From: Utricularia gibba
Taxonomy: Eukaryota > Plantae > Magnoliophyta
Length of the DNA stretch: 64,000 bases
Direction of reading: 5' to 3'
Assembly (NCBI GenBank): GCA_002189035.1
Contig: NEEC01000018.1
Span: 1,302,001 to 1,366,000 of the forward strand
The position numbers were made by a program, and so were the translations under genes. Shown here in pieces: positions 3,001-58,295 of the stretch (position 1 is the first letter of the stretch; every line of letters begins with the position of its first letter). Under the pieces are notes generated by a model. The model searched no databases. It had not been told where the DNA came from and saw only the letters and a program-made list of their open reading frames with translations.

Positions 3001-3159
3001 TGTCTACTGTCCGGAGTTTACATAGGAAATGTGAAGGTTCTGGTTCGTGTCTCGTTCGGCATCGATGGCGCCAATAAGGATGTCGCCATGAAGTTGGCCG
3101 TCAAGTCCGAGGACGTCACTGTTAGTGATGCGATCCATGACATAGTCGCCAGTGGCTAG
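1..3159 (+). CDS. COPG: Coatomer subunit gamma (gamma-COP), 5'-truncated, multi-exon
   Basis: GT-AG exons read [22 protein letters not shown] (3-143), [39 protein letters not shown] (570-819), [65 protein letters not shown], and a C-terminus ..[23 protein letters not shown] with TAG at 3157-3159. These match gamma-COP trunk and appendage motifs. Confidence 0.96.
195..488. repeat. Three tandem copies of a 97-bp unit in the first visible COPG intron
   Basis: Unit start CTAGACCCTTGATTTGATG recurs at 195, 292 and 389. Copies differ by a few substitutions; each contains CTCGAG. Confidence 0.95.
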
Positions 3160-6588: not shown

Positions 6589-7300
6589 TTTACCGCGGAA
6601 TCCCAAAATCTAATCCAGATAAACAAGAAACCGGCGGTCACGGCTCAGAAACAAATTTCTTCAGAATAAATGTGAAGAAGACATTCTAAAGTGCCCAAAT
6701 GTTTTAAGCTCTAATCTCAACTACTCATCCCAATGAAAAATCGTCAGCAGTTGTGAATCCGAAAAAAAAAAAAACCCAAACAATCCAACCCGTAAATCCG
6801 GCCATTTGAAAACGCATCAACAACTACAGAGGCAATGAGTTGAAGTAGCAAAGTAGAATAAAAACCTTGGGAGAGCCAACTCCAGGAAATGGTATCAAAT
6901 CCAATTTTTGACCTCAGTCTAGCGGATGCAATCGTGCTATGAAGCGGTAGCATTGTGCCCAGGCTTCCCAAAATCGAAACAGTCCTTCAGATCCCATAAA
7001 AGGAGAAAGAAAGAAAAAGTCAATTTTCCTTTGGAATTTATATGCCTGGCGAGAAAATTTGAATCTGAATCCAAAATTGCATACAAAATAAGCCTACCAA
7101 TCGCTGCTATAAAAAAGCTATCAATCATAAAATCAGTTCATTAGAAGCGTACCTCGTCCGACAAGATGCCAACAATCCAGCAGCTGAAGACGACGCTGCA
7201 CAGGGTACAGGCTTTCCAGATGCCGTTCTAGGTAAGAGATTCGGGCGCCGGCACAGGGATCTCCTGCAGACCCGATGACTGGAGCGCACGGAGAAACCAT
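6589..7300 (-). CDS. NFD6-like small mitochondrial-type protein, 3 exons, apparent frameshift just after the ATG
   Basis: Exon 2 (6984-6866) reads R|TVSILGSLGTMLPLHSTIASARLRSKIGFDTISWSWLSQ, matching the family motif (M/L)LPLHS.IASARL. Exon 3 (6609-6589) reads DFGIPR-stop. Exon 1 ends at the AG|GT donor at 7153 and is Arg/Ser-rich in the frame that splices correctly. Confidence 0.72.
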
Positions 7301-7328
7301 TAGAAGAGCCCACGATGAGAAGAGAGGT

Positions 7329-7466
7329 TTATAGGGTTTGCTTTTGCTATTTTACCATAAAGTCCCTCTCAGTTATATATACTATCCGGAACTTAAATCC
7401 GACGTCGTTTAACGTCGAGAAGTTAATGAGCCTGACATGGCCCAGAAAATATGGGCTTGTAGCCCA
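7329..7466. promoter_or_regulatory. Telo-box plus site II (TGGGCY) elements in the divergent NFD6-like/RPL27 spacer
   Basis: TAGGGTTT near 7332-7339; GGCCCA 7439-7444, TGGGCT about 7453-7458, AGCCCA 7461-7466. Site II/telo-box pairs are established in plant ribosomal and mitochondrial gene promoters. Confidence 0.6.
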
Positions 7467-7947
7467 TACTACACTTTGATCTGCTTGCGACCCATAGACT
7501 AGTATGCCTGGCGCTACCCACCCAACATCTGTCGCCGCGTTATTCAAAACACTCGTCGCATTTTTCTCCGGCGAACAGTGGCCGAAATAGGTAAGCCGCA
7601 CCATGATTCTAATCGTCTTCAGATGTATTCAACACCCAAAACCATAGTGTAGTCTGGAAATAATGGTGGTTAGTACGAGGAAGTCATTTTCTTTTGTACG
7701 TGTTGAGATTAGGTTTTTTTGTTGCGATGAATGCGATGCGAATAATCTTAATGATTACACTGAATATGTATAATTCTTGTGGGGATTCTTTGAGTTCTAG
7801 TACTTTGAGGTTGAATTAACTTTATCTGGACTCCTGGGGAGGTTGATATCGGGTAATTTCTTGTAGATTTTGGGATCAGGAGACCTGCATTTAGTTTTTT
7901 TTTTTTTTTTCTAATCTTGTAGTGTGTATTTTGAGAGCTAACAAATT

Positions 7948-8609
7948 ATGAATACCTACACCTCTCTGTTGAGAAGACTGAGTACAAGGGATATGATCGC
8001 AAGCACACCCATTTACGCCTCTTCCATTGGTACTGATTTTTGTGAGCTTTGTAGTTTTTACCAATGGAGTATGTGACCTAGTTATGCATTGTAGTGTCAT
8101 CTGGAGCGGGACTTAGCGTGGTTTTCAGGCGGTGGGCAACCAAGAAAACGGCTGGTTCTACAAAAAATGGCCGTGATTCTTTACCCAAAAGTCTTGGTGT
8201 CAAAAAGTTTGGTGGAGAGGTAAGGGAATGAAGTTGGGAGAGTTCGTTGGCTATGCTTTTGTTTCTTAGATGTCTGTGTCAGTATGACGTCCTGCAGATG
8301 CTGAGAAGATCAAAGCAACCTTTTTGTTCGTTTACATAATCTTTTTCTGATGGGAGGTCGCTTGATTTGCAGCGGGTGATACCCGGCAATATCATTGTTC
8401 GTCAAAGAGGTACGCGGTTTCATCCTGGGGACTACGTTGGTATCGGAAAAGACCACACTCTGTACGCACTAAGGGAAGGAAATGTAAAATTTGAGAGAAG
8501 CAAGCTTACCGGGCGAAAATGGGTTCATGTAGAACCCAAGGAGGGCTATGAAATCCATCCGGCTTATGCAAATTCTGAACATGTCCCTGAGGTAAAAGCT
8601 GCAGCCTGA
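7948..8609 (+). CDS. RPL27: Organellar (mitochondrial-type) 50S ribosomal protein L27, 3 coding exons
   Basis: Exons 7948-8029, 8095-8219 and 8372-8609 give [43 protein letters not shown]|[40 protein letters not shown], the bL27 signature with an N-terminal presequence. Confidence 0.95.
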
Positions 8610-9554
8610 TCTTGCTTTCGTCTGCTTCAGCCATACTCTGTATCATGTGAAGAGTTTATCTCAGTCTATAGATCTCATGCTTTTCACTGCTTTCGGTTAC
8701 AATCCTGTTGCACAATTCGCATTCCTATCAGCTAGCAATAATCATGCCATGATGCACTAACATCCTTCACTTCACCAATGCAATTCCAGTATACTTCTCT
8801 GCATCTCCCCCATCCTGAAGGTAATGAATTTCCCTGCTCCTATCATGAGAGAATTTTAAATTATGTTGTATTCACTTCGTGGTTTACATGATTTCCATCG
8901 CCCTATGTGAGGCGCAATAGATTCAGAGAATTTAAAATGCAATCTGGACATGATAAGTAAATAAAGTGGCCGTTGTTTGGTTTCCAGTGGGCTGCAGGCA
9001 GGCACACTGCTGCTACCCTTTTGTAGCTCAAGTTGCAGATAAGTATTCATATTTTAGGAGCAGCCCCTCTGACATTTGGGACACGATGATAGCTGTTCCT
9101 GATGAGCCACCCACCCACTATCATATTGGATTATCAACATTTCTATAACTGGTGCAACCCCACAGCATATTCGATTCCATGCATTATCAATATTACTTAG
9201 ACATGGGGTACATCAATAAATTAATTCTTAGGATGATCATTTTTCTCACACATATTTTTTTCGAAATCTTCTGTACATATCATTGTATTAATTTGTAGAG
9301 ACGCTCTGTTCTGAAGCACATGTATAGATGGATGATCAAGTGACATGTTCTGGATAGGCGTTATCCTATGCACTCCACTGGCAATATGAACATTCAAATT
9401 AGAAATGTTTGGAATATCACTCTGTTGATTTATAATAAAGTAATCCTTCACCTGAGAAATGGCCTTCAATGAATCACTATGTTTGCAATCTAATCTATGT
9501 AATATAGCGTAACACTTACATGAATAAGAAGAAAACGAGAATGATAAATAACAT

Positions 9555-9870
9555 TAGACCCCATTTGGTTGAGGGGTTGATAATATAAATTATTTGGATA
9601 TCTTTAAATCCATATTCATGGGTTTTATACAAAAACCTATTTGGTTAGTGTATTAAAATTATTTGGATTTATCATTACATGCGTTTGGTATATTAGTTTA
9701 GAAAAAAAAGTGTTTAGTATAATTAACATAGATATGGGTTTATGGGTTATTGATGGGTTTATTTAAATTTGTTGAATAAATTTAAACCCAACAATAATTT
9801 ATATACCAAACATTGATAAAATATTAAACCAATGTATAAACCTAGTTAAACCCACAAACCAAACAGCTAA
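9555..9870. mobile_element. Tourist/PIF-Harbinger-like MITE remnant
   Basis: Left end TTAGACCCCATTTGGTTGAGGGGTT and right end AAACCCACAAACCAAACAGCTAA form an imperfect inverted repeat with a TTTGG/CCAAA core, flanked by TTA/TAA. The interior is AT-rich and non-coding. Confidence 0.5.
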
Positions 9871-12023
9871 TAGTTATATTACAAGTAAAATATTACAAAC
9901 TGTTTAATTTATTTAAACAGTTTTATTTGTAAAATATTACAAATAAAACTTAATAAGTCTATAATTTCTTAAAAAACTCAAAGTATATTACACTCATAGT
10001 TATATATCATTTAGAATGAGGTCCTTATTATATAAACAGCTAATGAATCTATTTAAAGAATAATTACTCAAGATGGTCATTGGGTTGGAAAATAGAAAAT
10101 AAACAGTATATTCAAATTTACTCTCTATAATTTATTTTGAGAAGGTTAAAATTAATGTCATATTGATTAGTTCATAATCCTGTAATAATCTCCTTATTAT
10201 TTTATATCATTGATCTAATGATTGGTTCAAATAAAATTATTAACAGATTATTGAATTTCATCTTCATTTTTTTTTGTTTCTCAACAAAATGCTATCTACT
10301 GTCCTCAACTGTTTAGGCTGCCCTATTTCGTTGCTTTCTTCTCTACGTTCGTGTATCATTTTGTTCCTATTATGTCATTAATTAGGATAATACAAAAATT
10401 AAAAATTCTATCTCATAATTAAATTAAAATACTAAATTATGTATTAATTAAAAAAAACACACAAGTTAAAAACATTTTGCCTATTCGGTTGACGTGTCCC
10501 GTCAGTACATTCAAGCTGTTGGGTTTGTCTTGGAACCAGTCCGTGACAGAGGGAGAAGCAGTTGGAGACGGCGGTGATAAATATAAATTAATTAATTTAA
10601 TTCAATTCAAAAAAAATCACGTACCGCGTACCATTATTTTTAATAATTATTAAAAAAGGTAAACAAAGTAGGAAGGGCGGTGAAAAATGTTCACACCAGT
10701 CATGTGCCTCCACGTGATCACTTCCCTCTAATCCACATCACTCGTTTTCTGATTACTATTTCCGCTGACTAATTTGAAATTTCCCCTCCTAAGGACAAGA
10801 TTAAGAAGGACCATATGATATAAATTAATCTCCCCAATATCATTAACAAACCCCATTCCCCTAATACCTATATTTCCAATGCGAACGGCAAGAGCGTTTG
10901 ATTGATGAGATTAGGATAAAAAAATAATTTACTTGAAATTTAAATAAAAATATCGTAAAAAGATTAATTTCTTTATAATATGTTTAGTCCATAAAACTTT
11001 GGTTGTAATTTGAAGAACATAATGAAATTAAAATCGATATTTTACAAACTATAATGTTTTTTGTCGTACATAATCTTATGTTTTGAAGCTCATTAAGAAT
11101 TAATTGTGTTGATCCATGAAAGTTTGATTATCTGATGAAGTTTAGATCTTGACGGATGACCTTATATTAGTCTTTAAGGAATTTCCTTTGTGATGGTAAA
11201 AATATTACGATATCTTACAAATCATGATTATTCTTATTACACATAATATAACGTCTCGAAAGTCATTCAAAGCAATGGTATTGATCTATAATGTCCGGTC
11301 GTCCGTTAAGATTGGATCTCGAAGAAATTACTATTTATATTGTAATTTAAGTAATATTTTTTTAAAAAAAAATTAATAACGTGTGAGACATGTAGTAACT
11401 ATGGCTTGTTGACCAGACCATTAGAAAGTGATTGATGGATGATGCAAGAGAGGGAAGGTCCGGTTTTCCCATTTAGGACCACGTGAAAATTGTTAGGGTA
11501 CGTGACATTTCCCCAATGTTTAGTAAATGCATTCACCATTTAATTGGTCACTATTAACCAATTATTAATATTTCCCAATTCCGAAACATTTTGGTTCCTA
11601 TTATCAACATTTTAATTTTATTTTCCCTTTATAAAAAAAAATAATATGAAGCAACAGTTTAATGAAATAATATAATATCAGAAAATAACTTATTTATTAT
11701 ACTTAATTGTCGAGAGGTGGGGTTGTGTTATCAGGGCAAGCCAAAAAAGTCTTATAATAAGGTTTATTGCCCATCATTTGCAGGTAAGGTTAATTAACGC
11801 CCTAAATAATTAATTAATCACGTGCCCATTCTTGTATGCCACATGTTAGAAAATACAACAAAGTGTCGCCATTCCTGTGTGTTACAAATGGATGCTTTGG
11901 AAAGCTTCGTCTTGTGCGTATTAAAACGTGATGACGTTGGTTGAATATTAAGTGAATACGGGAAAAAAATAACCTATTTTCCCAAAAATAAAAAAAAAAT
12001 GCATTGAAAATTGAAATCGTTAA

Positions 12024-12694
12024 GAGAGTATTTGGTACGTTAATTTAACTGTTTAAATATTTGTATGTTCATAAAAATATAAGTTTGGTAGACTAATTTA
12101 ACAATAACGATTGTTTTACAAAACAATTGTAGTTTTGTAAAACACATCTAAACAATTCAATTTATAAAGTAATTATTTTAAATAATTCTATAAAAAATAA
12201 TATTATTTTTAAATATATATATTTAAAATCTATGTAACAAACAAACTTAATTCTAACCACGCAATACATATTTATCTAAATACGAATAACTCAAATACAT
12301 TATTAATTATTCTATACTAACAAACACATTGTAATATGCATTTAGTTGAATGTCCCAAATTATATTTAATTCATGAATTTAGTTGTTTTTACTTAATCCC
12401 AAATTGTACCTATTAATAAAACATAATATAAAAAGTATTCTAAACCCAAACACACTAAACCTATTTATATCCTAATACCATGAATAAAATATATTTTGGA
12501 GTGTATTTTAATAGTTCATTTAAAATTTTAGTTATTTAATTTAATATAAACTATATTATTTACTCTATTTTCAATAAACGTATATAATAGATTTATTTTT
12601 TTAAAAAATAATTTTAAATTAACACTTATCAGACATTCATATTAAATAAAATATTCTCTAACAACTATTTGAAAACTATCTACCAAACATTTTC
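12024..12694. mobile_element. Degenerate PIF/Harbinger-type MITE(s), related to a copy at about 15310-15570
   Basis: Ends GAGAGTATTTGGTA (12024) and TACCAAACATTTTC (12681-12694) are inverted. Internal blocks 12097-12124 and 12278-12297 recur at 15321-15349 and 15516-15535 with similar spacing. Confidence 0.45.
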
Positions 12695-13752: not shown

Positions 13753-15050
13753 ATGAAGAGTAGCTGGCAGCGATTGGTTGAGGTGGAGAAGATTTTGAAC
13801 GGTGACGATGGTTTCTGGGGGTTGAACGAGGATCATGTTGCTGTGGGTTTGATGGAATCGGGCCACACATTTTTTTGCGACGAACTTCAGGCGGTTTTGA
13901 ATTCTGGGAGCGTTTCGCAATCCCACTCTGAGTCTTCTTATTCGATTCAGAGAACGTTGAGCTCCCCGCCGGCCGGAGATGTCGCCGGAGTCGGTGGTAG
14001 TCAGAGGAAGAGAGCGGGAAAGAGTTTTAAGGTGGGTTTATCATTAGAACGCTCAACGAAGAGCTTTTATGTTCATTTACCTTATTCGCGACGTTGGGTT
14101 TCTTCAGGGAGGGGCGGATGTGAAACCGGAGAAGAAAAAGATGAAAGTCTGCGAAGACGAAGAATCCAGATTCTCCGAGCAAAACAGTAACAGCAACAGC
14201 AAAAGCACCATCACGGCCGCCGACAGCTCCCGGAAACACCCCGCGGCGAGTGGATCCGACAGCAACTACATCCACGTCAGGGCCCGCCGTGGGCAGGCTA
14301 CCGACAGCCATAGCTTGGCCGAGAGAGTAGGCAACCGCACCCTTCTATTTTTTTCACACGTTCTAAAATGGATCGAGTCTGATAATGAAAGGATCCAGGC
14401 GAGAAGGGAGAAGATCAGCGAAAGGATGAAGTATTTACAAGACTTAGTTCCCGGCTGCAGCAAGGTAACGGGAAAAGCAGCAATGCTGGACGAAATCATC
14501 AACTACGTGCAGTCCCTTCAACGAGAAGTAGAGGTGAAAAAGAATTACCCCAGAATGTCTCTATTCACCAGATTTCACGACTGCAACTTAAAGTTTCACC
14601 TTTTTCACCACCACCCCAGTTGCTATCCATGAAGCTCGCTGCTGTGTCTCCAAGGCTCGACCACGACATTGAAACAAATCTGCCTCAAGAGGTAATAATA
14701 ACCGTGCTTTACAACACAAAACTCAGACAAAATCTCGCTGAACACTTCAACAGATCTACCGCTCAATTCTTCCATCGGCGGACCATTTTCTTCTGCACAG
14801 CGGGATCAGCAGCGCTCCCTTAGCGCTTCCAACCACCTTCTCCGATTCCCGAGTTCAGCAGTTTTCATGGGAGAATCATATTCGAGATCCCTTTGCTTCC
14901 TCGTTCATTCCTCGATCCTTCACAGGTGAGTCAAGTTTCGCCCCAGAAAAGAAACGCATCCGACACGCACTTTCTGACGTTCTCCGATTATCCTGCGTGT
15001 GCGCAGGTGGATTCAGGGGAGTGGGGAACGTGAAGACAGAGATGCTGTAG
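13753..15050 (+). CDS. bHLH transcription factor, subfamily XII (CIB/BEE/BPE type), multi-exon
   Basis: Contains [21 protein letters not shown]|[45 protein letters not shown]|LLSMKLAAV. The last exon reads [14 protein letters not shown] with TAG at 15048-15050. The ATG at 13753 is inferred (13852 is an alternative). Confidence 0.92.
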
Positions 15051-15309
15051 CTGTGGATTCAACGTATTGTCTTGTGATTTGCTGGATGCATGTAACAGAA
15101 CACATGAAGCTCGATTGAGAAAACTTGGCACTTATTTTCTGCCTCTCCTACGGGGAGTGAAATAACTCAGAAAAAAATTGACCAAGTTAGGCTAATTATA
15201 ATTATTTGAGTTTATTGTACTTGATAAATTCATTTAAAAATGAAATTTCATAAATAAATAATGGGAGTTTTAAAAGGCATTTTATTGTATTTGATGATAA
15301 TGTATATAT

Positions 15310-15570
15310 TGGTATGTTGGTTTAACAATAAACGAGTGTTTTACAAAACTACTTTAAAATACTTCGAATTAAGTATTTTAAAAATTAAAGATGGGTTTTG
15401 ATGAACAACTCAATTTATAAAATATTTATTTTAAACATATTTAAAAAACATAATATTAATTTAAATACATATATTCAGAACTTATATATTTAAATAAATA
15501 AATATGTAAATATTTAAATATAAATAACTCAAATATATTATTAGTTATACTGTAATACCCAACACAGCGA
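15310..15570. mobile_element. Second copy of the AT-rich MITE-like repeat at about 12.1-12.3 kb
   Basis: Shares TTTAACAATAA(A)CGA.TGTTTTACAAAAC and AAATA..AATAACTCAAATA with 12097-12297. Confidence 0.4.
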
Positions 15571-16137
15571 AATAGATTTAAGAACTGATCTAATTAATGA
15601 ATTCTATGATTTTTATTCAAATTCTCGTTTTAAAAATTATTAATAATATGTGAATTTAATATTATAGTAATTTCTTTTTAATAAAAAAATGATAAACCCT
15701 TCCATTCAATGATTGCGAAGCAGCGTTGCTAATACTAAATGGGCCTTCGGTTTTAATTGCATGATGAACTGGGCCCAGTGGTCCAATTTAATTGCAATTT
15801 GAATTCCTCCTGCTTTGACGTGTAAACCAGCTGTTTTCGTCTGTTTATTTTTATTTTTATTTTTAGTAAATAATGCATGTTTAAAAATTAAATTTTTTAA
15901 TTAAAAAAATTGCTCATTAGCGATCAGCTTTGAAGGCTGCGAGGTTATGATGAGCCACATGCATTGAAATTTGAAGGGAAACCTCGTTTTGTTTGTATTG
16001 TTTGTCTCTCCTCTTCCCTGGAAATGGGAATCCTTCCCCATGCGTAACCCAGCAATCTCTGGTAAGCCCACGTCGACGAAGATTCGCATTGTGTTTATGA
16101 GCTTTTGCTTCTAAGGTTGATGATCGGATAAGAAAAC

Positions 16138-18928
16138 ATGGTGGAGTCTAATATGCCGGAGCCGAGTGAACCCACCTTGACGCCAGGTATGGCGATGTTT
16201 TTTTACCCTTTTTTTGGTGAAGGGATTTATTTCATGGATGATGGGTTTTCGTTGATGTGAATAAATGGGTGGGATTTTGTGATGAAAGGTTTGGAGAAAA
16301 TCGATTTGGGGAACGCTGAGGATGAGAGGAAAACGAAGCTTGGTTCTCTGAAGAAGAAGGCGATCAATGCCTCCAACAAGTTCAGGAGTTCCCTGAGCAA
16401 ACATCGCCGGAGGAACAGCAGAGTAATGTCGGTTGTTCTGGTGGAGGATGAGCATGATGCCGAGGAGTTGCAGGCCGTGGATGCCTTCCGGCAGGCGCTG
16501 GTCCTGGAAGAACTGCTTCCTGCAAAGCATGATGATTATCATATGCTTCTGAGGTGAAATACCGGCTTTCATTGATCGTATTATTCAAACCATTCATTCC
16601 AAGAATGTGTATACGCAGGTTCTTGAAGGCAAGGAAGTTTGACATTGAGAAATCCAAGCAAATGTGGTCTGATATGCTTCAATGGAGGAAAGAGTTCGGT
16701 GCAGACACCATAGCCGAGGTACTGTATCGGATCCGAAGAAAGTATTCCTTTGCAAGGAGATGATAGGAATGTTACTGAGGCCTGATGCTTTGAACAGGAC
16801 TTCGACTTCAAGGAGAAGGAAGAGGTGCTCAAGTACTATCCACAAGGGCATCATGGCGTTGACAAGGTTGGAAGGCCTGTTTACATTGAACAGCTTGGAC
16901 TCGTCGATTCCGTGAAGCTCCTGCAAGTTACAACAATGGATCGATACCTCAACTACCACGTGCAAGAGTTCGAGAGGACGTTTGCTGATAAGCTACCAGC
17001 CTGTTCAATTGCAGCAAAGAAGCACATTGATCAGAGCACTACCATTTTGGATGTTCAAGGAGTTGTAAGTTGGGATAAAGTGAAAGTTCTTAGTCATTTG
17101 GGGTGAGATGCTGATAGAAATGACTTATTTTGGAATGCAGGGGCTGAAGAGTTTCAACAAATCTGCAAGAGAACTCATTCAGCGACTTCAGAAAATTGAT
17201 GGAGATAACTACCCTGAGGTATCTTATAATTCTCTTATGCTTTTCTGGTTCTTGTGCGAACACTTTGCTTCCATTTTTCAAGCTGGTGCCTTTTTCTGTT
17301 TCTCCTTCAGTCGCTTTTCCAAATGTACATCATCAATGCGGGCTCTGGGTTTAGGCTCTTGTGGAACACAGTGAAATCATTCCTGGACCCGAAAACCACT
17401 GCAAAGATAAATGTAAACCTTCTGAGTTCACTCAAAGTTAAAGCTTTTGAAGCTTCAAACATAGGTAAAGATCAACAAACCCTGTTACCTTTTCATCAGG
17501 TTTTGAGTAACAAATACCAAAGTAAGCTGCTAGAGGTTATTGATGCAAGGTACTGCTCTTCTTTTTTTCTGGCATTTGGGGAAAAAAATTAATCAGTTAG
17601 CATGCAATCAGCCTGTTCCATCTTGATAGTTCTATAAAGAAATATGCTACCTTCTTCTTCCACTTGATCCCATTCACAGTGAGCTCCCGGAGTTCTTAGG
17701 CGGAACATGTACCTGCAAAGACAAAGGTGGCTGCATGGTTTCCGACAAGGGACCGTGGAACGACCCCGAAATCATGAAGGTAAACAAACAAGACTCTGTC
17801 CTGACCAGAGCAATGCACATTCCTTAGGTACCCTGTTCTGATGCACCTTGATTGATTTTCTTCAAGATGGTTCGAAGTGGAATGCACAAATGCTCCACCA
17901 GAGGCTCCATGCCTGAGGAAAAGATGATTTCCGAAGACGAAAATGCTGCCCCAAAGGTAAGTAAAATCCACCGCTACTCTTTTTCTGATCAGACCTTTTG
18001 GCAGCTCTTTATCAGAACTTCGAGCTATTTTTGTACGATTGCAGATCGTGAAGAAGAACATCTCCTTCAATCCAATGAACGAGAACAGAGACTGCACACT
18101 GCATTCCCAGCTCTCCGCAGTGCAGGAAGAAGTAAGATGCAAATACTATTCTATTGATGAAACATAATATGCAAGTGACAAATGGAAACTTCCAGGTGAG
18201 GGACAACCATGATGAGTACGGGCGATTTGTTGAAAATACCGTCGCCGGAAACTGGGTCAAAGCAGCTCAGGCAGCGAAGCGAGACGATCTTTTCATTTCT
18301 ACAGGTGAAAAAGATCATCACAAAAAAATCGCCCTTGCTTTTTCTTTTTTCACCCACATTGTGCACTTTCCGGCCACCACAGATCTATACTCCGCCAACG
18401 ACAAGAAAGCGATGGATGGTTTAAGCAACCATCTCCTCACCGGAGTTCTCACATTTGTGATGGGTGTTGTGACAATGGTGAGGATGACACGAAATATGCC
18501 CAAAAAACTGACGGATTCAACTCTCTATTCCACTTCAATCAACAGCGGGGATTACATGGTTAAATCTCGCCCTCACCACGGGTACGAATCGCTTGATCCC
18601 TGGATTTCTAGGGCGGATTACCTGATCATGGTGAAGCGTATGAACGAACTAGAGGAGAAAACAGGGGTTCTCTGCAGTCAGCCTGTTGCAATGCCTCCAG
18701 ATCAAGAGGAGTTGCTGAAGAACGCTCTTGATCGCGTTGATAACTTGGAGCAAGAGCTCTCTGAGGCCAAAAAGGTTTCAACTTCTTCACACCCATCTTC
18801 AGATTCATTCCATTTTCCTCACAAGAGAAACTTGTCCACAGGCGCTAGAGCAAGCACTATCCCAGCAAGAGGAGCTGCTGGCCTACATCGAGAAGAAGAA
18901 GAAAAAGAAAAAGTTCTTCGCTTTCTAA
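16138..18928 (+). CDS. Sec14-nodulin phosphatidylinositol/phosphatidylcholine transfer protein (SFH family)
   Basis: Exons give [26 protein letters not shown]|[78 protein letters not shown], and a nodulin tail [28 protein letters not shown] with TAA at 18926-18928. The frame is continuous across the junctions checked. Confidence 0.95.
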
Positions 18929-20232
18929 GATGGCAGCAGAGCTTCTCGTCTCCAGATAGCAGACACAGAAATGCTGATCAGGAGACGAGTGTGCAGACAA
19001 ACCGTCTTTTCTGTCTTCGTCCATGGCAATTGGCACTCAAAAATCCACCGTCTCTTCTACCTCAGGGCAAGGGCCCATTAAAATCCAAATCTGGGCACAT
19101 TCCGGCCCAATAAGCCCTACTTCCGATTTTTCCTTTTTTTTTTTATATGATATGGAAATGGGGTTGACACTGATTATATTAAAAAATCTTTAAATAATAA
19201 AATATTACTTAAAAATATTATCCAATTCACACATGAATGTGGATTGATTACAAAATTTAGAATATACTTTCAAGTTAAATTCATTTTTTAAAACATTAAT
19301 AAATCGTGGAAATTGTTTATTTAATTTCATTTACTAAAATATCCCTCGCGGTCACGAAAAACGTAAAGGGGGTTTTTGGTCGGACACCCCCAAATCGCGG
19401 CTCTTTTTTCTCCCGACGGACCGGACCAGTCGATCTCTACAGTGAGATTACAACTATACCCCTTTCCCGCGTGCAATTACCTAATTGTCCTTGGTCTCTC
19501 TATATCATTGTCCAATAATTTCGGTACGTGGGGGGCCACTTCAGACAATCGCGTCATAATGATTCTGTGTCTATGGAGCTCGTGGGCCGCTGCACTGTGC
19601 AGGGCGTCGTTTAGCGCTATGTGATCCGCACATTATTCCCTTCCCTTCTTTACATTGAAAAAGAAAACAACAAACGCTTGTGTTTTTAAATGAATGTGAA
19701 TGGCGTGAAGAAATCCCGGGTGGGCGAAGCAAGCAAATACTGTAAAGGGAACCCCAGATGTCTTGAGTTGAGCAGGAAGTTTCTAGATCAACAAAAACTG
19801 TTCCCTTAAGACAAAAGTGTCTATGTCCTGAGTGAAATCACAGCGAAACTACCCACAAAAGACTGAGTGAAGGTTTGGTATAGGAAATGGACAGGGGTAT
19901 CGGGAGAGTGTCTGTGTGTCTGTGTGCTTAAGAATTTGATTTACAGGATAAATGATCTGCTGCTCTTCCTTTAGCTTTATGTTGCTTTTTCATTACCTGG
20001 TGCTCTATAAATCAACCCCTTTGAGGCTCTATGTTACTTCCCCTTCCTTCCTTGCTCTCTCTCTCTCTCTATCTCTCTCTTTCTTTCTGGTTTCCTTTTA
20101 TCTTCAGTGTTGTCGCTGGTGTGTGTTTTTCTGTGTCTTGTGTGTTAATCAGTCAGAATCTGGTGCTTGCACAGGGATTTTTGTGTGTGTTTCAAATGCT
20201 ACAGCTACTGCTGGCTTTCATCTTTCAGCTTC

Positions 20233-20358
20233 ATGTCTGCTCTTCTGATTGAGCTTTTCCTTTCCCGGTTTATGATCATTTCCACTCAGTGGCGCCGTAC
20301 ACGTTTACTCCAATCCTTCTCCGTTGCGTTTCTCTACTGGTTTTACTACATCTCGTGA
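20233..20358 (+). CDS. Conserved-peptide uORF (sucrose-control/SIRT peptide) of an S1 bZIP
   Basis: ATG 20233 to TGA 20358 encodes MSALLIELFLSRFMIISTQWRRTRLLQSFSVAFLYWFYYIS (41 aa), with the hallmark QSFSV.FLYW.Y..S end. It stops 92 nt upstream of the bZIP ATG. Confidence 0.93.
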   Translation: MSALLIELFLSRFMIISTQWRRTRLLQSFSVAFLYWFYYIS

Positions 20359-20450
20359 TCCTTCTTCCTGCTTAAGATAGATATATTACTAAAATAAGAA
20401 GAATTAAAGGTGAGAAAATAAAGAGATCTATAAGCGTTTCTTGGTTTGCG

Positions 20451-20849
20451 ATGGATTCTTCAAGTGGGGTATCGTCGAATTCGCCGGGAGTTCAAGCGTC
20501 GTCGCCGGAGGAGGATCTGCGGGTGGTGATGGAGGAGAGGAAGAGAAAGAGGATGATCTCGAACAGGGACTCGGCGCGGCGGAGCCGGCTCAGGAAGCAG
20601 CAGCATCTCGACGAGCTGACACGTGAAGCGACACGGCTCAGAAAAGAGAATCACGACTTCATCACCAGCCTCAACGCCGTTACTCATTACTACATCAATA
20701 TGGAGTCGGAGAACGCGGTTCTGAGAGCCCAGGCGTCGGAGCTCACCCAATGGCTACACTCGCTACACGAAATGATCGCCTTCAGCGGCGGCTCCGGCGG
20801 CGGTGCCGACGACGATTTCTTGCTTTTAGAGCCTGTTTATGGAATTTGA
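20451..20849 (+). CDS. S1-group bZIP transcription factor (bZIP11/2/44-like), intronless
   Basis: MDSSSG..EERKRKRMISNRDSARRSRLRKQQHLDEL..MESENAVLRAQASEL matches the group-S basic region and zipper; the upstream SIRT uORF is diagnostic of S1. Confidence 0.94.
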   Translation: MDSSSGVSSNSPGVQASSPEEDLRVVMEERKRKRMISNRDSARRSRLRKQQHLDELTREATRLRKENHDFITSLNAVTHYYINMESENAVLRAQASELTQWLHSLHEMIAFSGGSGGGADDDFLLLEPVYGI

Positions 20850-21682
20850 CGAGATGAATAAAAATTGCTGGGGCAGTAAAAGTAATCCTTCGCCCCTGCT
20901 GTGTTTCCTCCCACCTTATGAAGTACTTGAAACCGCACTACGATTTGTCGTCATCATTCATGTCGCCCACCTTAAAATAACCGCCATTAATGGCGGTTCA
21001 GAAGCTCCATCTCCAACACAATACACACCCACCTTAACTGCCCTCTGGCTCCATGCTCTGAGACACTGAAACATGGAGGGCGGAGGAGGGTGGAGATCCT
21101 CTTCCGACATGCTCCGAGGTTGCATTGTCCGCGCTCTGAGAGACCAGACACTCCCTGAGAGCTCCTTCTTCTTACACTCCACCGATGAAGGGGATTGTCC
21201 GGCGATCAGACAGACAATCCCTAGTTGCTAATCTTGCAGAACGCCAGCCATTGGAGTTGTGCGTGCAGTCTTTTTTACACTTTATGCCAATGAACACAGG
21301 CCATAGCTTTGACTCAATCTTCACTTTAATAAGGAGGATCCATGAACCTTGGTGATTGGGATCCGTACACCCATGTTATGTTCTACTCTACACCCATATC
21401 AATTTTTCATCCAAAAGAAAAAGGCAGAATTCAAGAGAAGTTTTTTTTTTGTATCAATTTTCAATGAATTTTCTAGAATTATAATTAATTTGAAGTTAAG
21501 GGACTTCTTTTATTCTTTCAGTAAGTGATTCTGTGGGGAGCACCCATTTGATTGGTGGATGGATGGCAAGTAGCAACAAAGCTTGGGAATCCTCCTCAAA
21601 TACATACAATTTCTTAAAAAAGAACTAATGTTGATTATTATGTTTCATCTTTTAAATATTTTTTATATATATATCTTCTTTA

Positions 21683-49208: not shown

Positions 49209-50285
49209 ATGGAGTGCACGGAGGCAAGAGCGCTGAAGCACAGTTTCTTGTCACAAATGGCTTCTTCCCAGATGCTCTGCGATGACGACGTTTGGCGCTT
49301 CAACGCAGCTGCTGCGCCGGAGGATTTCCCGGTAGAGGACCTTCTTAACCTGGATTTCTCTGATAAGGAGTTTCAGGACTGTGGGGGGGCTTTTGAGGAG
49401 GATGAAGAGGGGTTCAGCAAGTTGGGGAATAAGAATTCTTCCTCCGCTTTCTCCGGCGGCGCCGACGACTTTGACAGTCTCTCCACCGGGAACCTCGCCG
49501 TTGAGGTAAGTGTTATCTAACCTGATGTTTAGGTCGTGGGGAGGATGAAAGAGATTTTTTTTTTTACTGAGCCGATGATTAATTTTTCCCCCGGAGATTT
49601 CTCAAGCTTTGGCCTTTGGTGGGTGATTCTTTTTCAGGTTGAAGGGTTGGAGAGTCTAGAGTGGCTATCTCAATTCGTGGATGATTCCACGGCGGAGCCG
49701 CCGTCGTTGTGGCCGATTGGAAGTTCAACGGCGAAAGCTACCACATGCGGCGGCGCGTTAACTAACGCGCCATCTCAGGACAACCGGGCCACGTTCTACC
49801 CTACGCCGGTTCCCCGGAAAAGACGGAACAAACGGCAGAGATCAAGCGGGCTCCGTTGGTCTTCCGTGTCGCCGCCCTTGAGCTCCGTTGACTCTACATC
49901 GGCTGCATCATCGTCTTCCCACGGGTCATCCTCACTTCCGACCTTGGTTTTCACCTACATACCTCACGACCCCGACTGGTTTTCCAGCATAGAAAAACCG
50001 CCTCCCGCAAAAAAGCCGAAGAGAAAACCGGAGAACGAAAACGGCGCCGTACCCGGGCGGCGGTGTACCCACTGCCAGGTCCAGAAGACACCCCAGTGGA
50101 GAACCGGACCGCTGGGTCCTAAAACTCTCTGCAACGCTTGCGGCGTCCGGTTCAAGTCCGGTCGGCTCTTCCCCGAGTACAGACCGGCCTGTAGCCCAAC
50201 ATTTTCGCAGGCAGTGCACTCGAATAGTCACCGGAAAGTTTTGGAGATGCGGCGGGTCAAGGAGATGACGGCGGCCGAGTTTTAG
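49209..50285 (+). CDS. Class A GATA transcription factor (GATA5/6/7-like), 2 exons
   Basis: Exons 49209-49505 and 49638-50285. Contains [21 protein letters not shown], and the zinc finger [59 protein letters not shown]. Confidence 0.95.
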
Positions 50286-50556
50286 AGGGAAGTTGTTACA
50301 GCGGACCGGGTTCCGCATTAAATTAGTCACTTTCAGGGATAGTTCTACTCCAGTTAAGGACCTTAAAGCTACACCATAAATGTTTTCCTTTTTCTTAGAC
50401 TAACTTAATACCCCCCACCCTTTTATAAAACAAAACCAAAACAAAAAACAAAAAACAGAAAAAAGAAAAAAAGTAATGCTCTTCCTTCAAAATACCTTCT
50501 CAAAACATTCATTTTCTTTGTTTATGTATTCAAATGAATACGCGTGTAAAAACTTA

Positions 50557-51097
50557 CGTGTATTTGATAGATATGTTATCTAATATACATTATAAAATAA
50601 TTATCGAAGTTATTGTTTAGTTTTTCTTCTTACAAATCATTTTTTGAAAATTATTTGTCATAAAATATAAGTGGGATTTATGTAATATCAAAAAAGTTTT
50701 AAATTTTTTACTTTTTTGGAATAAAATTCATTCATATTTAATGTTTTGAAATATTTTTCAAAAATTATACCAACACATTACAACTTTTCCTCTCATATTT
50801 GTTACATTTTTTATATGTTTATTTTAATACATATATATATATATATCATTTATAAAATAATTGTCGAAGTTATTGTTTAGTTTTCTCCTTAAAAATCATT
50901 TTTTGAAATTATTTCTTATATAATATAAGTGGGATTTGTGTAATATCAACAAAGTTTTTAATTTTTTTACTTTTTTTAGAAGAAAATTGGTTTGTATTTA
51001 ATAAAAAAGGTTTTTTTTGAAATATTTAAAAAAAAAAAAAAAAAACTATACCAAACACATTATAACGTTTTATCCTATATATCTATCAAACACGACA
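50557..51097. mobile_element. MITE with an internal tandem duplication of about 260 bp
   Basis: Perfect 12-bp inverted pair TTTGATAGATAT (50563-50574) / ATATCTATCAAA (51079-51090). Inside, 50588-50790 is repeated at 50847-51075. Confidence 0.65.
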
Positions 51098-52554
51098 TCA
51101 CTTTATACATATATATATTTATATCATTTATATATCAAATATTTTAATAATAGGATAATTATTTATGTAAACTGAAATAATTCCAAATTGAGGTCAGTGT
51201 GTGTTGGTGTGGTGTCATTTAATGTGCTACCATGTTAGTGTGTGCACCCCTTCCCCTTCTTTATAGGGTAAGCTTGTAAAGGGTGGGTTGGGTTGGGTTC
51301 AATTATTCATAGGATGGATGGATTATTTGGGGTTTTAAAGTCGTACGCCGGCGACCGGAACCACTTGCCGACAGCGACGTACGGATGAATGGGGCTGCCA
51401 CCAAAAAAGCCATTCAAGTTTATCTCCTGTTATTGGATCACCACAAACTGCATTCCACGTCCACCACCCGACACAATTCCTTTCTTGTCTCATAGATTTT
51501 CGATCGAAAGGGACTCTGGCGCCATGTATATATGGAGTTAATTTGAAAAATACCCACTATAATTTAATTATGTGATAAAAGTATTCATTTTATGTTGAAA
51601 AAAATAGATTTAGTATGTGAGAGAGATTGGTATCATGGATACTTTAATAAAAGATTTTATGTAAATACGTATGTTACCTTAGAAGTATTGAATCTCGGCT
51701 GGGGTTTATGATCGGTGTGAGCCTCAATTGTAAGGCTAGAAGTCTTGTACCGATATTCTATATTGGTTATGGTTCGAAAAATAAAGTAAATTTTCTAATT
51801 TTGTATGAGGGCTTTGTTAGAGATCAATCGTAATTCAAATAAATTTGAAGTTAATTTAAAACATTAATATTGTGTCATGAAGTAATTTTTCGATTAAAAA
51901 TGTTGGTTTAGATTATTAAGACTTTTTATTTTTATTTTTAATATATTGTGACTCATTTTTATGTAATCTAAATATTATATATATATATATTTTATCAATA
52001 ATTGTAGATTGTATTACTTTTTTTGTTATTTATTCTTGAAAATTTGATTTTCATCTAATATAAGATCATAAACAATATTTCTTTTGCTCTATCCTTAATA
52101 TTTAATCTTTGTTGTGTTTATTAGGTTTTCTCTCGAAAATAAAAAATGTAAAATTGTGATAACTATGTATTTAAAATAAATAATATCGTATAAGATGAAA
52201 ATAAATCGTGACATATCAGGTATCCCACATTAATTATGAATATGAAGATAATCAAATTTGTGAATAGTTAGTTAGATGGGAGGAAAGTTTGTAGACTCAT
52301 CCCATTTTAGAAACGGTAGAAAAAACACTTTCCGTAGGTATTTGAAAAGGATTCAAGATTATTATGTTGGGCGTCCCGACCGGCGGCGCAGGTTGGCCCG
52401 GAGAATCAGAAGGGGCTCTCCAACCCATTTATGGACTTTCTGGTGTGTTTTCTGAGCGCTGAAGGCTTTACGTTGGTTTAAGCCCTTGATTTCTCATGGA
52501 GAGTGGGTTGGGGCTTTGCGATCTTGTCCCCTAGCGCTTGGACAGGCATTTAAT

Positions 52555-53400
52555 CTAGGGATCAGGTAGCAGAACCGCTTTGATCGAGAGGGGTGGATGC
52601 ATATTGTCTACGAGGAAAGTGGTGATGGGGGTCGACGCAGGCGGAACAGAAAAGACTAGACTACATCTGAGAATGGCCTTGCCTTGTTCTGAAATAACCA
52701 GAAGCTCTGAAAACTTTGGAGGCATCGAGGAATCACCAGCATTTCTTGGATGGAAATGCATATGATCACACCCAGCACCTTTCTTTAGAGTTGTAATGGG
52801 TTTGAATCACAATCGTACAGTTTTGAATCCGTTCGGAATATTTGGAATCAAGAAACCACAATTTAGATTCATGTGAAATCGATGAAACCAATAGTTCGAA
52901 ATCAGTGAACTGTCATATTTATGTGCTTCCAAAAACATCCACATGAATTGTTATAAATGTCTAAAAATGATTACATGTATTATTAATAATTGTTATGGAT
53001 ATTTAAAAATAATAATATATATTCATGTGGATGTAAGATAAACATTCTCTATTTTTCAGGATCATTTCTAAACATACTTAATAATCATTATAGCAGCCCC
53101 AAATCATTTGATTCTAGTGTCGATTCGATTTAATGTTTATTCTAGTTTTGAACCGAAATCATATGATTCGGTTCGGTTCAAGATTTAAAAATTGAATTTC
53201 GAATCTAAACTATAATCGAAATCGATAATGAATTGTAATTTAATAACCGATGGTTCAAAAAAATTGTTAGATTCCAAATCAAAACCAATCAATTCTACAA
53301 CTCTACCCTTCTTGCACCAGCCATTTGAATTGTAAGGGCAAACTTCCCCTGCTATAGTTTGTGCCACCGGTCCAATAGCCTTGGTTCTGGGCCTTTTAAT
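52555..53400 (-). pseudogene. CCCH zinc-finger gene fragment interrupted by a hAT MITE
   Basis: Removing 52786-53305 plus one TSD joins AQTIAGEVCPYNSNGWCKKG to AGCDHMHFHPRN.. in frame, giving C-x7-C-x5-C-x3-H with the conserved Y, G and G. No ATG lies in frame upstream. Confidence 0.62.
52786..53305. mobile_element. hAT-superfamily MITE, 520 bp
   Basis: TIRs TAGAGTTGTA (52786-52795) and TACAACTCTA (53296-53305). 8-bp TSD CCTTTCTT (52778-52785) / CCCTTCTT (53306-53313), 7/8 identical. Subterminal TTCGA/TTCGG repeats. An 8-bp TSD is established for hAT elements. Confidence 0.82.
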
Positions 53401-53505
53401 TAACTCCTATGTTGGCTTCTTTAAGTAAGCCCATATGATGATGGGCCTGTTTCTGTTTTAAAACCATACTACAGCATTCGCTAAGCCCAACTGAAGCCCA
53501 GCCCA
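53388..53505. promoter_or_regulatory. Cluster of six site II (TGGGCY/RGCCCA) elements
   Basis: TGGGCC 53388 and 53442; AGCCCA 53428, 53484, 53495 and 53500. Confidence 0.55.
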
Positions 53506-53647
53506 TAATTATTCAACCACATGAGGGGTAACTAATATTTACTTGGTCCAACTTGGAAACAACACACAATGCTCGATTAACCACAAAGGCTGTTCCGGGT
53601 TGAATTCAGCCAGACACCTTTGAGTGATAGATACAGCAGTTACCAGA

Positions 53648-55937
53648 TCATCCCTTCAAGGAGTATTTCTTCCCGGTGAAAGCTTGGAATTTGGGCTCTT
53701 CGGCCTTTGGAGGCTCCGGCTTCGCCTCCTTTGAAGCATCCTGCAGCCACAAAAGACATGGGGTATAGACAGAGGTCGATGGCACTGAGATAAAAAAGTT
53801 TCCAAATGACGGAACCTTCTGAGGTTCTCCAGTTCTGTTAGCGTTAGAACCAAACACAAGCTTTCCCTGGCTCTTGCGGTTGGTACTTTGTGAGCTGGAA
53901 CTGGAGGGCGCAGATGTGGCAGCAGTGGATCCATTTGGTTTCTTGTCATGGGTAGAGGGCAGTGGTAAAGAGGATGCAGTCGATGGTTTACCGTCTAAGC
54001 GCCGCCCCACGCCCATGAAGGGGTTAAATTTTGGTTCTGCTTCTACAGGAGGTTCCTGGACTGAGCAAGCAACCAGGATTTGTTAGGTCGTCGTCATTCA
54101 TGAAGAACACATGATTTGAACAATAAATATTCAAATGAGGATAAACCAGACCTTCAGCCGGTGCTTTGCCATTAGGCCTTGATGCTGTAGGTTTTTCAGG
54201 TTCCTTGTAATCAAGAGGAGGAGCAAAGTCCACCTCACAATCAGTCTCTATAATACTGATCCCACTAGAAGGTTTTGTCTCAACGATGTCTATGTAATAC
54301 TTTTTGTTATTGTAAGCCACCATTATACTATCTCCCGTTGTCAGACATGAAAAGTTCCTCAATGTTGTCTCCAAGCTGCGAGAGAGTTGGAGAGTTATCA
54401 AACTTAGACAAGTAATAATGAATCTACGGGATATCAGAGGAGGCACAACATCACAAGCGCCAGATAATGTAGAAACTAATTCAAATGCACCAGGTAAAAC
54501 ATGAACAAATTATGTACTAGAATAGGAAGTTTCTAGGGTGCTCACATAGCCTTGGGGTTAGAAATATCCAAGAAATCTTTGGTGTGTGGCTGCAATTTAA
54601 CGTATGTACCCTTGGGAAGGGTGACATTTTTGACTCGCACAAAATCTCCTTCTTGCAACAACAGATTCTCCATCATCTAAAAACATGGAAGACAAGGTTA
54701 GGCAATTGTCATAAAACAGGCATGGAATTTCAGGTTATTATTTACTACCCAATACGGCATATATATCAACCCTTCTTCAGCAATAAACTCCAGAACACCA
54801 CAATGAGACATGCGCTCAGCACCATCATTCCGAAGCTCAAACAGCATTGGGTAATCGATATGCAGGGATGCTGTATCAAACGAAGACCCAAGAGTAAGTT
54901 AATGGTGTAAATCAGAATAAAGGAAGAAACATGTGTGTAGAATGACTTGCCAAGACGGTCCAGTGCCGAAGGAGGCATTATAACTGCATGAATTTCCCAA
55001 GATAGCCAGAGAGAGAAAAAAAAGTGTTTAACATAATTTTGAAAAAAAACTTCCACAATGGAAAATAGAATGCTGCCTACCTTTGTCACCATTTTCGATT
55101 TGTGCCTGAAAATAAGACACACACCAGATTAGAGCTTCTTAAAATTTACGTAGGATTTAGAAGCAGTTAACCTAAACTAGCTACCATGTCATTTTGTATC
55201 CAAACTGGCAAAATGGAAATGCAACAAAGCTTGCTAGAAGCACATATTATTGTGCGCCAGATTGCTTACATTGTATAGCTTGAAATGACTATAAGTAAAG
55301 ATTACAGAATGACCAGCCAGATGAAGCCTTCTAACCTTGTCAATGAAAGATGCAGGGTAACATCTATATGTTTGCTCAAAAGATGCTCCATGGTATCCAT
55401 ATCCATCGAAAAACTGAAAAGAAAAAAGTTCAAGAAAGATCAGAACATGTGAAACATGTCACAGGAAGAAAATTCGCGTCTCTCAATAAACAAAACGCAC
55501 CAACAGTACCTAAAAATGAAAAGTAAAGTTCCCTACAGAAAAAAAAGGACGAGTGCAATCAAGCTTTACAGATAAGCAATCTTGTCTCAGCAAAAGGTTT
55601 TCCTACGAACACTACCGACTGTTTTTCAATCAACGGCTACCTTCCAGAAGGAACAACGGCTGAGCAACATTACAATCGAAAAAAGCACAAAAATTTCAAA
55701 TTGCACGTGATTTCAATAACGCAACAACATCCAAATAAATACGATAATCTTCAAACAAGCCAAAATAGCACGAGGAGGCACGTTTCATTCTGCATAAACC
55801 CCTAACCCCACTATTGTCGCTTGATTTCCCCATTGCAACGGAAATTTTACGCAAAACAACATAGCAATCCGCATCGTGATGAGGTTTTTGGCATAAAAAA
55901 TAAATACATATATCAGCATCAAAATCACGCATACCAT
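53648..55937 (-). CDS. UFD1: Ubiquitin fusion degradation protein 1
   Basis: ATG-only first coding exon (55937-55935, GT donor), then [26 protein letters not shown]|AQIENGDK|[11 protein letters not shown]|[25 protein letters not shown]..|..[12 protein letters not shown]..|..[15 protein letters not shown].., ending [13 protein letters not shown] with TGA at 53648-53650. Confidence 0.96.
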
Positions 55938-56265
55938 CTTCGTTGTGTTCCGGTGACGGGAAAACACGGCCAAGGCCTTCAACTGCAACCACGAAAAAAA
56001 AACAATACTGAAGATTGATTAATTCAATCAAAAGCCCATAAAACGATTGGAATCAATATATCACCACTTTCAGATCTGCCCAGAATTCCAAGGGAAGAGA
56101 ACTGGAGTACCTTGGAGTTGGACTTGAATCGGAACAACTCCGTAGAAAGGACGCGCAAGGCACGGAATCCCAAGGCAGCCGAATTACAACTAAAGGCGAA
56201 AAAGCTGATAAAAAAAAAAGAAAAGAAAAAACAAAATAATTGAGGCCACTCACTGGACGTACAAA

Positions 56266-56296
56266 TGGGCCGGAACCCAATTATGGGCCAGCCCAA
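56266..56296. promoter_or_regulatory. Site II elements upstream of UFD1
   Basis: TGGGCC at about 56266 and 56284, AGCCCA at about 56290; also AGCCCA near 56033. Confidence 0.5.
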
Positions 56297-57168
56297 AGAT
56301 TTACCCATTAATTATTTTTAATACGAATATATATATTAAATTTATTATTAAAAAAACACATTATTTTTATATTAAATTCTATAATGATTTAAAAAATTAG
56401 ATTTTATAATATTATTATACGAAATATACTTATATCATCAAAATTGAATATATTTACATAATTTTAAAATTGATTTTATTCTATATAAACTAAAGTACAA
56501 ATTCAAAATATAGAACATGCATATAATATATACATAATTTTTAAAATATTATTTATCTTGAAAAGTATTATTTAATATAATCTATCTTAAATATACGATA
56601 TATATTTGTTTACCATACTAGAATTCTTTTAACAAACATATTTCATATTTAAATCTTTAATTTTATTTTAAATCATATAATTAATTTTTTAAAAAAAAAA
56701 ACTAAGTATAGCCCTTCATTATATATCAGTTTTTATATTAAGAAATGTAATTTTATTACCATCATCATAGTATGATGTCACATGACTGATGTCAACTTTA
56801 GGGATGACGTGGCGCACGTGATGCCTTTGGTACTGAGTGGTACTATTACATTCTAGATTCTATCGGGTATTTATATTGTTACACGGACACGTGTCACTGG
56901 ACTGGCGTTTCACTGAAAAGAAAAGGATCTGGTGAAGAACATGGATTGCAGGAAACATCTGGTGTCCAACGCAAGCAAATACAGGAAGGGATCACTCTGA
57001 AACCAGGAGCAACAGCAAGGGAGATGATAGCATACAGTTGAATGAAGTAAACTCCAATCCTCACACACTTTCTACACCAACTGTTTTTTTTTTTTTTTTT
57101 TGAAGAGAAGCTCATGATTTCAAATCTAACTTCAGTTCTGAAAAACAAAAAAGAGAGAGATGCTTCAT

Positions 57169-58295
57169 TCAGGGGCGGGGAACTGCCGGCGGTGTGAAGA
57201 ATCCAAGCTTGGGGTGGGGTAAAGTGGTGGGATGAGGCGGGAAGGTAATTTTGGGAAACGGAGGAAGTGGGTGTGGGGAGATTTTTGGAAATGGCGGTTT
57301 CGTGATTTTTGGGAATGGGGGAAATGGGTGTGGAGGGAAGATTTTGGGGAATGGGGGAAGCGGGTGTGGGGAGAGTTTTGGAAATGGTGGTTTCGTGATT
57401 TTAGGGAATGGGGGCAATGGGTGTGCAGGGAAGATTTTGGGGAATGGGGGAAGTGGGTGATGGAATGGGAACGGCGGCGGTTTGTAGGTCGGGGTCGGAG
57501 GCTTGTAGATCGGCGTCGGAGGTTTGTAGATCGGAGTCGGCGGCTTGTAGGCCGGAGTCGGAGGTTTGTAGATCGGGGTTGGGGGCTTGTAGGCCGGAGT
57601 CGGCGGTTTGTAGACTGGCGGTTTGGGCACCGGTGGTTTGTAAAGCGGCGGGTGATGCAACCAGCCCTGCAAAGGGGGCAGAGGAAGCTTCGGGAGAGGT
57701 GGGTGTTTGAAATAAGGCCACAAGAATTTGGAATTGCATGATGCGGATGAGAATTTAAGGTTTCCAGTGGGTGCAAACGTCACTTTCCCGTTTTCCAAGG
57801 ACTTGGAAACAATTTTCACGGCGGCGGCGCAGGGCGCAGCGGCGGCGTTATGGAGTCGAGCGAAGCAGTCGTATTTCAGTTTGCCGCCGTCTACAACTTC
57901 TTTGGGAAGCGCAACTCTGAATCCCCCGCTTTCTTCCAATTCTCCGGCGCCGAAAGTCGTCACCTTCCCGTCGGAAAGCTTACACTCAACGCTCACATGT
58001 AAACCTGCATGGCAGCACACGTCCGTCAATAATCTGAGTTACCCAAATTGACAGAAACGTCACCGCCATTACACACTTCCGATGCCACTGAAATGTGATA
58101 AAGACACAGTTAGTTGTCAGGGCATGACATAAAGTAGTAGTTACCGGCAAAGGCCTGGCTGGTCTGGAAGTTGTTAGAGACGCAGTCTGCGCACTCGGCG
58201 GCGCCGGTGACCTCAAGCGCCGCCATGTTGGCGAGGCAGAAGCTAAGAGGTGCAAGGAGTAAGGAGAGGAAGAGCATGCTATGAAGAATCCCCAT
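57169..58295 (-). CDS. Proline-rich cell-wall protein with a Pollen Ole e 1 domain (PRP2/PRP4-like), 2 exons
   Basis: Signal peptide MGILHSMLFLSLLLAPLSFCLA, Ole e 1 motif VTGAAECADC..G|LHVSVECK, intron 58144-58005, then KPP(V/T)(P/Y) and PPFPK repeats; TGA 57169-57171. Confidence 0.93.
57245..57646 (-). repeat. Coding repeats of the PRP: 21-nt KPPTP(A/I)Y array (57481-57646) and PPFPK/HP modules (57245-57460)
   Basis: A 21-nt periodicity is visible in 57481-57646. The repeats also explain the spurious antisense ORFs in this interval. Confidence 0.9.

Follow-up and report, generated by a model that had tools for sequence, protein, structure and literature searches.

Two minus-strand open reading frames in the genome of Utricularia gibba (53185–53367 and 52555–52761; all positions refer to the window, that is, the whole stretch of 64,000 nucleotides analysed) are separated by a DNA element and carry the two halves of a CCCH zinc finger. 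The question raised by this locus is whether a zinc-finger gene lies hidden there, inactivated by an insertion halfway through its finger and frame-intact after a precise excision, as proposed in a preliminary description, or whether the finger is a leftover of something larger. The answer developed below is that what remains there is an ordinary pseudogene scrap with a DNA-transposon insertion, not a revivable gene.

The inserted element and the joined frame

Both open frames were found as described, and so was the element that splits them, a 520-bp insertion closed by perfect 10-bp terminal inverted repeats (TIRs) and flanked by an 8-bp target-site duplication (TSD). The features of the element and of the interrupted frame are as follows.

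52786–53305, no strand assigned: probable hAT-like non-autonomous element, 520 bp, recognized by its TIRs and composition
52786–52795, plus strand: TIR arm 1, TAGAGTTGTA, the first five bases of which fit YARNG
53296–53305, minus strand: TIR arm 2, TAGAGTTGTA, complementary to arm 1 at 10 of 10 positions
53306–53313, minus strand: upstream copy of the TSD, AAGAAGGG, identical to the Erythranthe orthologue
52778–52785, minus strand: downstream copy of the TSD, AAGAAAGG, with one G>A change
53306–53345, minus strand: N-terminal half of the relic finger (..EVCPYNSNGWCKKG), from translation and from tblastn and blastn matches to the loci L002, L003, L005, and L006 introduced below
52756–52777, minus strand: C-terminal half of the relic finger (..AGCDHMH); similarity to the relatives stops at 52756
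52555–52755, minus strand: open tail of 66 codons past the last His, with a stop at 52555–52557 and without homologues

The inverted repeat, reading TAGAGTTGTA at one end and TACAACTCTA at the other, stops at 10 bp without further extension, and the 10-mer TAGAGTTGTA occurs three times in the 64-kb window, against 0.09 expected. Its third exact occurrence, at 58950, and a one-mismatch TIR pair at 31670/33347 were rejected as chance, having no partner or no duplication. The GC content of the element is 27.5%, as compared with 44–48% in the flanks. All of its 14 CpGs fall within the subterminal ~115 bp and ~185 bp, to which repeated GAATC/AATCGA motifs are likewise confined, and the central core is palindromic and CpG-free. 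The two TSD copies directly abut the element ends and agree at seven of eight bases, the single mismatch being synonymous (AAG/AAA, Lys either way), as had been noted before. Since Erythranthe carries AAGAAGGG at the target, the upstream copy is taken as the ancestral state, and the G>A change in the downstream copy as having arisen after the insertion.

The hallmarks of hAT elements include an 8-bp TSD and a YARNG terminus (PMC3014272). In the present case the duplication spans 8 bp, the relatives having a single copy in an alignment that is ungapped over the joint, and the short, perfect repeat begins with TAGAG. Judged from these hallmarks, the element is probably hAT-like and non-autonomous. 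No second copy was found in the 64-kb window, which leaves the earlier name "MITE" unsupported insofar as it implies a multicopy family; recent MITE activity is unsupported as well, the site being filled in both DNA samples examined. Contigs from elsewhere in one of these samples (X2) match the element only through 26–38-nt AT-rich interior pieces (at least 85%, in contig data), and its copy number is apparently low.

Removal of 52778–53305, that is, the element plus one TSD copy, yields a 107-codon minus-strand frame without stops that includes CPYNSNGWCKKGAGCDHMH. The frame and the C-x7-C-x5-C-x3-H motif are restored by this operation, in agreement with the preliminary description, and the insertion point falls in the Lys-Lys-Gly codons of the finger. 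By itself the bare Cys/His pattern is weak evidence, arising at ~0.1 per 64 kb in shuffles. A C-x8-C-x5-C-x3-H pattern is also seen on the plus strand at 15046–15105, in a short open frame between stops at 15031 and 15163, and is probably due to chance, in keeping with this rate.

The joined finger could likewise be a chance Cys/His pattern, produced by placing unrelated flanks side by side; the shuffle rate, the further pattern at 15046–15105, and the Pfam scores are in line with this. Four Pfam CCCH models (PF00642, PF18345, PF18044, and Torus, PF16131) were considered, with the gathering threshold as the criterion. With a 45-aa joined peptide, Pfam gave only matches below the gathering thresholds (29 for either model), to the CCCH-type models Torus (18.3 bits) and zf_CCCH_4 (11.5 bits). 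Intact fingers of the relatives also remain under the threshold at 18.5–24 bits, the window's finger scoring lower still, and the matches are weak because the models are weak for the C3H19/NERD type of finger. The separate, unjoined pieces gave no match in Pfam and NCBIfam. Against a fortuitous origin, the ten best matches in a PDB search were all CCCH-finger proteins, the nearest solved structures being CPSF30/Yth1-type fingers (E about 0.01–0.2; CPSF4 fingers best, E 0.009–0.04), and the Sesamum finger shares 10 of the 16 residues that are not ligands. Together with the ungapped DNA match across the joint and the shared syntenic position, both documented below, these results reduce chance to a practically negligible explanation.

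Homology to the terminal finger of C3H19/NERD

Comparison loci were picked via orthologues of a GATA transcription factor gene in the window, from Penstemon davidsonii (L002), Sesamum (L003), Erythranthe guttata (L005), and Sesamum radiatum (L006); a locus from Olea europaea (L007) was compared as well. In tblastn, the joined peptide matched the Sesamum locus at 15/20 residues (E 5e-8; VCPYNANGRCKKGARCDYLH), the Penstemon locus at 13/21 (E 2e-7), and the Erythranthe locus at 13/20 (E 1e-6). The matches fall at the extreme end of a SWIB/Plus-3/NERD_plant/GYF gene, and a corresponding finger is also present in Sesamum radiatum and Olea, making five Lamiales loci in total. Similarity to the C3H19/NERD terminal fingers starts at about 53342–53345, and blastn gave an ungapped 59-nt match (74.6%) that runs from 53342 to 52756 and crosses the excision joint. 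Thus, an uninterrupted homologue exists in other Lamiales, and the insertion together with its 8-bp duplication is proven by comparison, the relatives holding the "empty site". More generally, virtual excision of a TIR/TSD element followed by re-reading of the frame can bring genuine ancestral coding sequence to light, and such a recovery is confirmed here because the orthologues match without a gap across the joint.

The family consists of plant PHD/SWIB/Plus-3/GYF proteins with a single C-terminal CCCH finger, and C3H44 is a paralogue of C3H19/NERD. Its members appear in databases as "Zinc finger CCCH domain-containing protein 19" or "GW repeat- and PHD finger-containing protein NERD". In the passage of PMC9699677 that cites Pontier et al. 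2012, NERD is placed in a pathway of chromatin silencing that depends on siRNA. A terminal C-x7-C-x5-C-x3-H finger is present in 47 of the 59 relatives found, and the window, too, has the "CP[YF]N.NG" signature found in Lamiales/asterid members. The homology is to a host gene, and neither retroelement domains nor repeats lie nearby, which disposes of the earlier suggestion of a gag-like CCCH relic. A tblastn match in Paulownia (L001), "VCPLNANGW", was rejected as chance, as the finger does not continue there.

In the Sesamum locus (L003), the public model at 15258–21305 fuses the NERD-type gene with a downstream CCDC90-like gene, the finger and its stop (~19149) being well inside the model. 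The two genes are separate in Sesamum radiatum (L006), and the Sesamum model is likely an annotation merge. In Olea (L007), the NERD-type gene at 708–12390 is annotated as three models (SWIB + Plus-3; NERD_plant; GYF + finger), and an SH3 gene directly follows it with no GATA gene between, an order unlike that of the other Lamiales loci.

Gene neighbourhood and the missing gene body

Two neighbouring genes bear on the origin of the finger.

49209–50285, plus strand: gene for a GATA transcription factor, oriented convergently to the relic and serving as the syntenic anchor for Penstemon, Sesamum, and Erythranthe
53456–54200, minus strand: 3' end of a UFD1 gene, from an RNA contig (X7) and a domain match (PF24842, UFD1_N2, E 2e-24)

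The GATA gene is located 2.5 kb from the finger, and its best relatives are all from Lamiales (60–66% identity). A plus-strand GATA gene and a minus-strand NERD-type gene stand tail-to-tail in Penstemon, Sesamum, Erythranthe, and Sesamum radiatum (L002, L003, L005, and L006), that is, in four loci from three families. The NERD-type gene is missing beside GATA in Paulownia and Rehmannia, which suggests that the gene has been lost repeatedly from its place beside GATA, as redundant copies are expected to be. Based on the tail-to-tail neighbour shared by the four loci, it is most likely that the remnant is in place and has not moved. The split finger very probably represents the last ~60 nt (~20 codons) of a C3H19/NERD orthologue at its ancestral position, tail-to-tail with GATA, an orthology drawn from that short stretch and one syntenic neighbour. 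The 64-kb window lacks the SH3 gene that the relatives have on the other flank of GATA, and UFD1 does not adjoin NERD in Sesamum radiatum, so that UFD1 is unsupported as the ancestral NERD neighbour; these two observations indicate that the region has been rearranged, and an origin in place is not strictly proven.

A different origin would be that a short C3H19/NERD piece was copied into the locus, through transposon capture, break-repair filling, or fragmentary duplication, the real gene being intact elsewhere. It would account for the small extent and sharp boundaries of the homology, for the enclosing GC-rich patch (52250–53460) that is without counterpart in the relatives, and for a neighbourhood that is otherwise non-syntenic. 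However, the GATA neighbour, the convergent orientation, and the similar distance all match the full gene in the four loci, with which a random landing would be a large coincidence. In addition, neither inverted repeats nor any other carrier structure was found to bracket the patch. We regard a copied piece as improbable and retain the reading of a remnant left in place.

Several further observations were made in the surroundings. GC-rich patches at 51250–51550 and 52250–52780 (46–49% GC) stand within an intergenic region of 17–25% GC, and neither is similar to the CCDC90-like gene that separates NERD from GATA in Sesamum. Scans of 50300–53700 for Rfam families, tRNAs, and promoters or terminators gave nothing relevant. 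At 52504–52555, ~50 bp match further contigs from the species at about 88–90% with unrelated flanks (loose ends of X1 and X2); the stretch is a short dispersed repeat that neither Rfam nor a tRNA scan recognized. On the minus strand at 57169–58295 lies a proline-rich protein gene (Pollen_Ole_e_1, PF01190, E 2e-6) with long PPxYKPPTP-type repeats.

What survives of the NERD-type gene, which is 1000–1800 codons in size, is confined to the finger. The rest of the gene is absent from the 64-kb window: in tblastx with the genes of the five comparison loci (L002, L003, L005, L006, and L007), only the finger and GATA matched, and blastn of the relatives' terminal exons and downstream DNA against 51500–54100 found the finger alone. 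The lack of a start codon noticed in the preliminary description was borne out, the open frame starting just 21 codons before the finger, and its caveat about a possible loss of upstream exons agrees with the data. As for the AG near 53407, previously put forward as a possible acceptor, it is not a conserved splice site, the terminal exon of the relatives being long. In Erythranthe it comprises at least 587 codons, from which it follows that the upstream sequence has been replaced in the window. The X7 RNA contig, which comes from this species, represents a spliced UFD1 mRNA with introns at 53740–53814 and 54061–54151. The mRNA terminates at 53456, on the upstream side of the finger and about 110 nt away, leaving no room for a zinc-finger gene body. 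The UFD1 gene as a whole (53456–56300, minus strand) is apparently intact and expressed, and a spliced contig carrying a second organism label (X19) matches these same exons.

These results bear directly on the idea of a complete or near-complete CCCH gene that was inactivated by the transposon and that an excision or an empty-site allele would return to work. The restored frame and motif speak for it, but the missing start codon, the lack in the window of any part of the long terminal exon or of any other domain, and the proximity of the UFD1 mRNA end speak against it. The idea that a hidden gene was inactivated within its finger is rejected: excision does restore the frame and the motif, but nothing functional would be regained from the ~20 codons left.

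Decay of the finger and its proposed history

In 44 of the 47 relatives with the terminal finger, the stop codon is placed one residue after the last His, and in the other three it is placed three residues after, whereas the window continues for 66 codons. Being situated where the C3H19/NERD family has its stop codon, this tail is most likely a former 3' UTR that is read through after stop loss. A HMMER search of the 76-aa post-element piece against 1.84 billion representatives found no real relatives; four bacterial matches, all repetitive Ig-like/PA14 surface proteins, were rejected as summed chance similarity because eight repeats each match one 28-aa stretch. The ESM Atlas gave low recognition and no family for the same piece. 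Within the finger, the window has Trp, Gly, and His at three positions where the residues listed for the 47 relatives are H/R/N/Y, S/R/A/H/Q/Y, and Y/F/M/W, respectively. Its Pfam scores, lower than those of intact fingers, point in the same direction.

The divergence of the finger is not inflated, with 42 of 58 nucleotides identical (~72%), as compared with 40–48 of 60 among intact genes of different families. Its differences from Sesamum are distributed over the three codon positions as 5/0/11, and this third-position excess, in about 16 differences only, suggests that the finger may have been coding until fairly recently. No transcripts of the region were seen: the X7 RNA contig does not include 52200–53455, and no RNA run is listed for 52480–52785, both at the level of contigs. 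For a gene that could be revived, the third-position bias is a favourable sign of recent coding constraint, but the lack of RNA coverage, the lost stop, and the changed conserved residues are added to the structural objections given above, and we judge such a gene to be very improbable.

The insertion state was determined in two DNA samples from different studies (X1 and X2), and the site is filled in both. Contigs of X1 span both element junctions (52557–52912 and 53210–53375), and a single X2 contig extends across 52200–54200 with 33 substitutions, representing a haplotype about 1.6% divergent. No empty-site allele, that is, no joint skipping the element, was seen in X1 or X2. The Logan contigs used demonstrate presence, not absence; with such contig data, low-level transcription of the scrap or a rare empty-site allele may exist. 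A cluster of five substitutions in 23 bp (52614–52636; G>A, T>G, G>A, C>G, and C>G), common to X1 and X2 as compared with the window, points either to a private allele or to an error of local assembly in the source of the window.

We infer the order of events and the mechanism of gene loss as follows. The ancestral state would have been a C3H19/NERD-type gene tail-to-tail with GATA, as found today in three Lamiales families. Deletion or rearrangement would have taken away the gene body, a redundant copy plausibly being lost in this way, and the expressed UFD1 gene now ends about 110 nt upstream of the finger. Either before or after the gene loss, a 520-bp transposase-less element, presumably of the hAT type, would have entered the Lys-Lys-Gly codons and duplicated 8 bp, one TSD copy mutating afterwards. 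The scrap, untranscribed in the data seen, would then have been left to drift, losing its stop and changing at three conserved finger positions. Given the third-position bias, the gene could still have been working when the element entered it, and the insertion could then have been the first lesion that disabled a working NERD-type copy, with deletion of the gene body coming later. This sequence of events is unlikely in our view; if true, a transposon would have disabled part of a pathway that silences transposons.

As a remnant left in place, the locus documents that one Lamiales lineage has locally lost a C3H19/NERD-type gene beside a conserved GATA gene, and supplies one dated-by-context insertion of an apparently low-copy, probably hAT-like element. 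In annotations it should be masked, the labels being pseudogene fragment and DNA-transposon insertion; it has little significance otherwise.

In comparison with known systems, the finger is closest to that of C3H19/NERD proteins, with which it shares the C-x7-C-x5-C-x3-H arrangement, the residues V-C-P-Y-N-x-N-G-x-C-K-K-G-A-x-C-D-x-x-H, and the position beside a GATA gene as in Penstemon, Sesamum, and Erythranthe. In contrast to the intact genes, the window has no SWIB, Plus-3, NERD_plant, or GYF domain, no start codon, and no post-finger stop, and its finger is interrupted by a transposon, altered at three conserved positions, and without a transcript seen. CPSF30/Yth1-type fingers resemble it in ligand spacing and in the Gly/aromatic pattern, but this likeness is generic to the fold and much weaker than that to the C3H19/NERD terminal fingers, and membership is not shown. 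The element resembles Ds-like elements and hAT MITEs in its 8-bp TSD, short TAGAG (YARNG) TIRs, small size, AT-richness, lack of coding capacity, and subterminal short repeats, and differs from them in having neither a second copy nor a related or autonomous element within the 64 kb. The locus as a whole is comparable to the remnants of lost duplicated or redundant plant genes, in which a tiny syntenic scrap persists of a gene that is otherwise deleted.
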